Assembly (NCBI GenBank): GCA_002104945.1
Contig: MCFH01000080.1
Coordinates: 124,001-188,000 of the forward strand
Origin: Piromyces finnis finn
Taxonomy: Eukaryota; Fungi; Neocallimastigomycota
Reading direction: 5' to 3'
Length of the DNA stretch: 64,000 bases
Below the pieces are notes generated by a model, which was not told the DNA's origin, made no database searches, and saw only the letters and a list, made by a program, of their open reading frames with translations. A program made the position numbers and the translations under genes. This document shows positions 30,820-36,332 of this stretch, piece by piece (the stretch's first letter is position 1; every line of letters begins with the position of its first letter).

Positions 30820-32284
30820 ATGTGGCCATTTAAATCTGCTGAAAAAATTTTACTTAAAAAAATGGATATTAATCCATTTTATCCTTATATACTAAAAGAT
30901 AATGGTAAATCATCAAATATATATATATATATATTATGTTTTTATTCTTTATTTTTTTTGGTTTTCGTTTTGTTTTTTTCTTCATTTTTTTTTCTTATTT
31001 GCAACTAATTGTTGTTAAAAAAAAAAAAAAAAGTATAATTTTATTATTATTTTATACTCTATCAATATTTTTTTTTATTTATTTCATTAAATATATCATA
31101 ATTATTATTAATATAATAATATATATTTAGTTTAAAATATATATATCACTTTTCTCGTATTGTTAATAAATACAATATTTTTACATTATTATATAAATCT
31201 CATTTGGTTGGAATTGCCTATTTATATAGAATTAATTATTAATGCTAGAAATAAATATTATTGGATTTCTGTTATTCTAGTAATAATTACTCTTTCTGGA
31301 ACTTTAATTACTTGGCTTGTCAAAGGCTTTAAAAATGTATAAATATCTTCTAGAGAATAAATATATTAAAAACAAAAAAAAAATAATAATAATAATTGGA
31401 ATTAACTTTAAAATTATAAATATATAATAATTTCTTTTCTTAAAAATATACATATCTATCTATATCTATAGTTATTCTTTTTAATTTTTGTCATATCCTT
31501 TATCGCTTCATTAATTTTTAGTATTTCAAAACTTGGTATTAATATTTATAAATTGGTGGCGGATGAAGAACTTTATATTTTTATGAAAATTAATATATAT
31601 GGTAAAAAAGTTACCCTCAGTGATATTTATAACATTTATATAAGAGTAAAAAAAACAGGTAAAGATAATTAAATAATTTCAAAAGTATCAATAAAAATAA
31701 AAAAAAAAAAGAGATAAATATGTCTATTTATATTAATACCTTCAAGAATATTAAAAATTTTATTTTACTTTTAATAATATTATATAATATACCTATTATT
31801 AATCATTCTACAATTACTTTTCAAAAAAAAAAAAAAATAATAATAATAATAATAATAATAATAAGATCAATGGGGAACTAGAAAATACTATTTAATTTTG
31901 GGAGGTTATAAAATGAATCCTTTAACAATATCCGGGAAAACTAAAAATATTGAAGAATTAAGGAGATTGGGGGTGATGATAGCTGAAAATTTAAATATAA
32001 ACTTTTTCGATTATCCAAACTGTTCACCTTATCGTACGTACATATATTCTTCAAATAAATACTACTATATACTATAGTTCATCTTTTTTTTTTTTTTTCT
32101 TTTTAGTTTTGTTCTATTTTCATTAACTTTATTTTTATCTAAAAAAAAAAAAAATAAAAAAATAAAATAAAAATAATACTATTTATATACATTTATATCA
32201 TTCCATGATTTTATATATATTTAAATTAATCTAGATGCTATCATTCATTATCCACCAGATTATGATTATGAAGTTGTTTTATAA
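30820..32284 (+). CDS. TMEM249: TMEM249 / CatSper-theta-like two-pass membrane protein, 5 exons, about 200 aa
   Basis: Exons 30820-30904, 31230-31336, 31472-31658, 31866-32033 and 32235-32284 splice in phase. Product has AEKILLKKMDINPFYPY, two TM segments, IYNIYIRV...DQWGTRKYYLILGGYKMNPL and IAENLNINFFDYPNCSPYHAIIHYPP. These parallel remembered human TMEM249 (PERHLARRLKNNSFYPF; VYVRL...[46 protein letters not shown]). A possible extra last exon lies at about 32350-32400. Confidence 0.8.
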
Positions 32285-32903
32285 AATAAATGTTTATAAC
32301 TATATTATCTTTAAAAAAAGGAACTATAATTTTTTATTTTTCTCCCTAGATTATTGATGCCAAGGAACATCAAAACAATGACAAAATCACAAATATATAA
32401 TACAATAGATAGTATACCATGTTTTTAAAGTATTATTAATAAAAATATAAATTTTCACATAATTTTTTTTTTTTTTTTTTATTTTATTACTTATTAAAGA
32501 TTAATAATGAAATGTAAACTAACAGACTAACAGATATTACTTTAATGGATTAAATAAAATATTAAAAATTGCAATATTGAAATGAAAGAAAAATATATAT
32601 ATATGTGAATATGCAATATATAGATATTAATTAATTAATAATAAAAATAAAAAACTAATAATAAATAAATTAATAAATCAATATTGAAAAAAAAAAAAAA
32701 AAAAAAAATTTTTTTTTTTTTTTGATGTCTTGAAAATAAATAAATAAAAATAAATTATCATTTTCTAATTTATTGTATGTATAAATTTGACATAGTATTT
32801 AACTCAAATTGATTTAATATAATAAATGTCTAATAATTATGATGTTGTTAAAAAAAAAAAAAATGACGAAAGACAGTGGTATTCAAATAGCTTTTTTTTT
32901 TTT

Positions 32904-36332
<3,429 letters not shown>

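Follow-up and report, generated by a model that had tools for sequence, protein, structure and literature searches.

A spliced gene of the gut fungus Piromyces finnis, in all likelihood an orthologue of the CatSper subunit TMEM249/CATSPER-theta

The gut fungus Piromyces finnis has an intact, expressed and spliced gene that, judging from its sequence, is almost certainly the orthologue of TMEM249 (CATSPER-theta). The gene lies in the window, the stretch of 64,000 nucleotides of contig MCFH01000080.1 that was analysed and to which all positions refer unless a contig is named. We hold with high confidence that the best overall explanation is a single-copy theta orthologue that is part of a fungal CatSper channel and would serve Ca2+ entry into the zoospore flagellum.

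The gene consists of five exons on the plus strand (30820-32284, Table 1) that join to 597 nucleotides, corresponding to 198 codons and a TAA stop; the list of open reading frames contains this region only as fragments. All four introns have GT..AG boundaries and are 135-325 nucleotides long, and the phases are consistent across the gene (1, 0, 1 and 1 for introns 1 to 4). The GC content of the exons (0.21-0.29) is about double that of the introns (0.11-0.13), in a window with a GC content per kilobase of 12-41%, mostly below 20%. Both the five short exons, with their phases and introns, and the two-helix protein of about 200 amino acids that a sequence-only reading had proposed were borne out: the protein has 198 amino acids and two hydrophobic segments.

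Splicing is documented by contigs from four public runs of three studies (one of the runs may be material from the genome project itself); these contigs cover exons 2 to 5 and skip the introns and, because they are spliced, we take the runs to be cDNA, the RNA status of the runs being itself a guess. All four predicted junctions were found. The joints 31336>31472 and 32033>32235 are present in each of the four runs. At junction 31658>31866, contig pieces stop at 31658 and resume at 31874 in all four, with a gap of exactly eight letters (31866-31873), and for junction 30904>31230, loose contig ends in X1, X2 and X3 are the end of exon 1. Use of the first AG (31130) as acceptor of intron 1 results in an immediate stop; the contigs use 31230. 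Profile searches and searches with exon 4 identified one copy of the theta gene in the genome: a second weak TMEM249 match on contig C167 (E 0.077, inside a frame of 856 amino acids) was missed by the exon 4 search and is attributed to chance. Contamination was considered and rejected, both the GC content of 13-29% and the gut-fungal neighbour gene being native.

Table 1. Features of the TMEM249-like gene (window positions)
Feature	Position	Strand	Evidence and remarks
Exon 1 (ATG; putative cytosolic N-terminal segment, aa 1-28)	30820..30904	+	Phase-1 donor; Pfam TMEM249 positions 2-23; joined to exon 2 in X1-X3 contigs
Intron 1, 325 nt, GT..AG	30905..31229	+	Sequence; contigs
Exon 2 (predicted transmembrane helix 1, aa ~41-59)	31230..31336	+	Hydropathy; spliced contigs; L050 and L054
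Intron 2, 135 nt, GT..AG, phase 0	31337..31471	+	Joint in 4/4 runs
Exon 3 (predicted transmembrane helix 2, aa ~65-83; start of putative cytosolic domain)	31472..31658	+	Hydropathy; 71-74% identity in two gut fungi
Intron 3, 207 nt, GT..AG, phase 1	31659..31865	+	Bridged by contig pieces in 4 runs
Exon 4 (core of putative TMEM249 cytosolic domain, LNINFFDY motif)	31866..32033	+	Pfam, PDB, conservation
Intron 4, 201 nt, GT..AG, phase 1	32034..32234	+	Joint in 4/4 runs
Exon 5, coding part (C-terminal 16 codons, TAA stop)	32235..32284	+	Contigs; 86-93% identity in L050 and L054
3' untranslated region, at least to 32427	32285..32427	+	X1 and X2 spliced contigs extend there

Pfam and the PDB were searched exon by exon, not with the joined protein. 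Exon 4 matches the Pfam family TMEM249 (PF15158) at profile positions 128-175 with 47.9 bits (E 1.7e-12; gathering cut-off 25 bits), and its only significant matches in the PDB, at E 4e-6, are 7eeb_J and 9ubw_J, the TMEM249 chains in structures of mouse CatSper; the alignment takes in the LNIN(F/Y)FDY block. For exon 1, TMEM249 is the sole match among 24,736 Pfam models (positions 2-23, E 0.041). Residue 6 of the gene model falls on profile position 2 and residue 133 on position 128; as these offsets are 4 and 5, the combined length of exons 2 and 3 is right to within one residue. Exons 2 and 3 alone, also when used as a three-species profile, gave no TMEM249 match in Pfam or the PDB, and PF15158 positions 24-127 had no match in the exon-by-exon search. 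The homology to TMEM249 that had been read from the sequence thus holds, with exon 4 above the family cut-off and the mouse chains matched; two of the three blocks of similarity named in that reading were recovered by the searches, the N-terminal block and, far more strongly, the LNIN(F/Y)FDY block. The end of this motif, H..H(Y/W)PP, crosses the junction between exon 4 and exon 5, which has only 15 amino acids; the sequence contains these residues, and gut fungi conserve them.

Hydropathy peaks only at amino acids 41-59 and 65-83 (Kyte-Doolittle 19-residue means of 2.4 and 2.7), which predicts a pair of transmembrane helices flanked by soluble regions, a short one at the N-terminus and a larger one at the C-terminus, with a presumed orientation in the membrane; mouse theta has likewise been described as having two helices (bioRxiv 10.1101/2023.03.17.532952). 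Other candidate matches were rejected: weak matches of an orthologous exon 2 to holin and DUF families reflect hydrophobicity only, and the clusters that an ESM Atlas feature search returned for exon 4 (Ycf4-named and unnamed short bacterial clusters, 0.93-0.94) come with no alignment, whereas the Pfam and PDB matches are specific.

A word search with exon 4 and P0002 as queries found only two fragments, both from gut-fungal metagenomes and leading to contigs L050 and L054; as its length limit shuts out full-length relatives, this search is uninformative about distribution. L050 carries exons 1 to 5 and L054 exons 2 to 5, and exon lengths, phases and AG/GT boundaries are identical in both contigs and the window, while intron lengths differ. 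Between the window and L050, protein identities of exons 1 to 5 are 75% (with the GT donor of exon 1 conserved), 58-60%, 76%, 94% and 93%; exon 4 is 89-94% identical in gut fungi, and the orthologous exons score 43.6 and 44.9 bits against PF15158 (cut-off 25). Exon 4 differs from its L050 counterpart by 21 synonymous and four non-synonymous codon changes, with 3, 1 and 21 nucleotide differences at the first, second and third codon position. An excess of differences at third positions is found in exons 3 to 5 between the window and its gut-fungal relatives, and the pattern of substitutions indicates that these exons are under constraint. Constraint is lower in exons 1 and 2, with one silent and seven replacement codon changes in exon 1.

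Downstream of the theta gene, the window and L050 both have Aladin in convergent orientation. This gene (AAAS, a WD40 nucleoporin; window 32904-34590, minus strand) is split into exons, probably extends further, and matches the Pfam family Beta-prop_Aladin with E-values of 5e-17 and 7e-8. Upstream, at 28531-29651 on the plus strand, lies a gene with a motif resembling the HExxH of zinc proteases and a weak match to Peptidase_M10 (E 0.01), likely encoding a secreted or membrane-anchored metalloprotease.

The genome (56,455,805 bases in 232 contigs) was searched for CatSper partner genes. Three auxiliary subunits of the canopy have matches above the Pfam cut-off: CATSPERB_C on contig C146 (E 6.5e-28), CATSPERG_C on contig C155 (E 1.2e-8) and CATSPERD-E_C on contig C160 (E 5.9e-6). 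Among the ion-transport matches are four intron-rich, single-domain pore genes with T-x-D-x-W filters, the aspartate filters typical of CatSper. The best single-stretch PDB match is CATSPER1 for the gene on C90 (TLDDW, E 1.8e-9) and CATSPER4 for the gene at C1:2104k (TQDGW, E 4e-15). It is CATSPER2 for the gene on C150 (TFDQW, E 2e-6) and CATSPER3 for the gene at C1:605k (TSDGW, split by an intron, E 5e-5), but these two are near ties with CATSPER3 and CATSPER2, respectively, and the labels rest on single exons. Four-domain Na/Ca channels outrank the CATSPER1- and CATSPER3-like matches (C90, C1:605k) only through summed repeats. The search for CATSPER1-4, beta, gamma and delta/epsilon that had been suggested as a check of the channel complex thus found homologues of each, with a single locus for delta/epsilon, and the proposed complex does not fail for lack of pore subunits.

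Profile searches of the genome found one delta/epsilon locus and no second delta/epsilon gene. A search with the CATSPERG beta-propeller profile was blank, which is not taken as absence, and absence does not follow either from the blank six-frame, exon-wise profile searches for ARMH2 and tau (C2CD6). A weaker CATSPERB_C match below the cut-off (L047:6499-6810, C132:11537, E 8.5e-5) lies outside the beta locus, in another gene, and is possibly a chance match or a distant paralogous domain.

The same genome has further channel genes. Two ion-transport frames, L042:2865-3482 (C2:902k) and L043:1876-2709 (C200:1093k), match the profile in its voltage-sensor part only (positions 3-111), go on with no pore and look like Hv1 proton channels; in sperm, CatSper is activated by alkalinisation. 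Three K+ channel genes (L022 C146:229k, L024 C197:259k and L026 C178:1312k) have no introns, a single domain and a TVGYG filter; they resemble bacterial channels of the Kv type, and horizontal acquisition is possible. Several multi-domain channel genes of the Ca/Na type (C169:353-365k, C1:1957-1972k, C3:62-73k, C197:262-265k, C11:8-10k and C3:40-42k), some of them tandem or duplicated, form a set that is unusually large for a fungus.

The identification of theta is correct but not new. TMEM249 was discovered because it co-evolves with the CatSper genes in a set of 1,256 eukaryotes (theta paper), and CatSper subunits of Allomyces were reported earlier (Cai and Clapham 2012, cited by bioRxiv 10.1101/230292). 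In 2026, a supplementary file listed TMEM249 under CatSper as occurring in fungi and, among these, specific to the flagellated ones (12 proteins, all PF15158 and with 21 predicted helices in total), beside CATSPER1-4, B, D/E, G, T and EFCAB9 (PMC13358043 Supplementary File S1); Piromyces finnis (56.5 Mb) is among the proteomes of that study, whose main text speaks of fungal CatSper without naming TMEM249. A 2025 table (PMC12638846 source data, Fig. 3), read by counting columns, has theta entries in Thecamonas trahens and Tritrichomonas foetus; for every fungus, P. finnis among them, it is blank at theta, EFCAB9, CATSPER1 and beta. In the same table, Tritrichomonas foetus has theta and most CatSper subunits and Trichomonas vaginalis has none. 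As these tables place theta in flagellated fungi, Thecamonas and Tritrichomonas, it is already published that theta is older than animals: the proposal that theta is ancient rather than animal-specific is supported, but not as a novelty. Our literature search found no paper whose main text deals with fungal theta and none that tests fungal CatSper function. What the window locus contributes is a verified gene model that also fills blanks in one published table (PMC12638846), and it supports the view, already present in supplementary tables, that auxiliary CatSper subunits predate the split of animals and fungi.

Because the genome holds four pore genes and homologues of beta, gamma and delta/epsilon, a fungal CatSper complex is the best explanation for the theta gene, whose product is very probably one of its subunits. 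In mouse, the cytosolic domain of theta binds the C-terminal tail of CATSPER4 and stabilises CATSPER4 in the complex, and theta self-associates and is required for delivery of the complex to the flagellum (bioRxiv 10.1101/2023.03.17.532952). By analogy, fungal theta, presumably inherited vertically along with the remaining CatSper set, would adjoin the CATSPER4-like subunit and bind its C-terminal tail with the cytosolic domain, which would span exons 3 to 5 and contains the most conserved exon, exon 4. It would thereby aid assembly of the four-subunit Ca2+ pore and its arrival at the flagellar membrane, and Ca2+ passing through the channel into the zoospore flagellum might affect its beat or its steering. 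The asexual zoospores of gut fungi swim toward soluble sugars and phenolic acids (PMC7609409), and chemotaxis to plant sugars and phenolics may be one such use. By this analogy, a role of theta in the control of zoospore swimming is rather likely.

The fungal complex cannot equal the mouse complex, as the PMC13358043 supplement reports no fungal homologue of either eta (TMEM262) or zeta. In the rows of mouse CatSper, beta-beta, gamma-gamma and eta-eta contacts are resolved, and an intracellular contact by theta is proposed but unresolved (PMC12799140). Higher-order channel rows in the fungus are less certain. It is a tentative and somewhat doubtful extension of the mouse data that zoospores have an eta-less CatSper in which theta would link the channels into flagellar rows, used for steering to plant sugars and phenolics. 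If true, the sperm 'hyperactivation' channel would have begun as a chemotactic steering device, and the eta-less zoospore CatSper would be a culturable non-animal source of the complex.

Several other explanations of the locus were weighed. That five short open frames in AT-rich DNA make up a gene by chance has practically no probability left: it is true that a single exon alone passes the family cut-off, but exons 1 and 4 match one Pfam family independently and in register, and the idea is refuted by the four junctions, all found in public contigs, and by an exon structure that is kept in two further species. Horizontal transfer of theta from the animal host or a gut protist, instead of descent as an ancient fungal gene, is very improbable. 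Gut fungi are known for such transfers (preprint 10.1101/487215), and the OrthoDB-based table lists theta for a gut protist, Tritrichomonas foetus, and for no fungus (PMC12638846). However, that table is equally blank for fungal CATSPER1 and beta, both of which are present in this genome, and its blanks are thus grouping gaps; moreover, it has CATSPER2-4 in Rozella, Allomyces, Catenaria, Rhizoclosmatium and Gonapodya. The AT-rich composition is native, as is the type of the four introns, and transfer would have had to bring in every one of no fewer than seven unlinked partner genes, which lie on six other contigs, as well.

It is also improbable, if somewhat less so, that the protein belongs to the TMEM249 family but no longer works with CatSper, as a relic or in an independent role. 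The reported absence from fungi of eta, the proposed neighbour of theta, would fit (PMC13358043 supplement), but the gene is intact, spliced and constrained in exons 3 to 5, the genome has a clear homologue of the mouse partner CATSPER4, and co-evolution with CatSper genes is the very basis on which TMEM249 was discovered (theta paper). More weight, though still not much, can be given to a true orthologue within a CatSper complex that has a non-swimming role, for instance in letting Ca2+ in when zoospores are released, encyst or shed the flagellum. The spliced contigs come from runs with no stated life stage, and as gut fungi are described as asexual (PMC7609409), the role in sperm cannot carry over literally. 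On the other hand, CatSper subunits are confined to flagellated fungi in the supplement entries (PMC13358043), and the mouse complex is flagellar, with theta governing its flagellar trafficking (bioRxiv 10.1101/2023.03.17.532952). We prefer a theta orthologue that would act in a flagellar CatSper channel of the zoospore. An asexual fungus with a CatSper set means that a pre-sperm role of the channel could be tested, and as CatSper, according to abstracts, has no working heterologous expression system, the fungal set is a possible alternative, which is an opportunity and not a result.

Among known systems, the TMEM249 orthogroup of flagellated fungi has the same family and topology as the window gene, as far as its supplementary entries tell (PMC13358043). 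Thecamonas and Tritrichomonas also have a non-animal theta alongside pore and auxiliary subunits, as does this genome, and in contrast to the fungal blanks of the same table (PMC12638846), theta, CATSPER1-like and beta-like genes are present here. Allomyces, another flagellated fungus, likewise has pore subunits and homologues of beta, gamma and delta, but its CatSper is discussed for sexual gametes and the pheromone response, and theta is unnamed in the consulted pages of that preprint (bioRxiv 10.1101/230292).

The closest comparison is with mouse CATSPER-theta/TMEM249 (PF15158; 7EEB chain J, 9UBW chain J), which has the family, above its cut-off, in common with the fungal gene. The LNIN(F/Y)FDY block is conserved in both, as are, by prediction for the fungal protein, two closely spaced transmembrane helices between short N-terminal and larger C-terminal soluble regions, and both co-occur with genes for CATSPER1-4, beta, gamma and delta/epsilon. 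The transmembrane and middle region of the fungal protein is too diverged from mouse theta to give a match alone; fungal theta is also shorter than human TMEM249 (198 versus 235 amino acids) and starts with ATG, whereas mouse theta starts with CTG. Finally, mouse theta is a protein of sperm, whereas the host of the fungal gene is an asexual gut fungus with zoospores.
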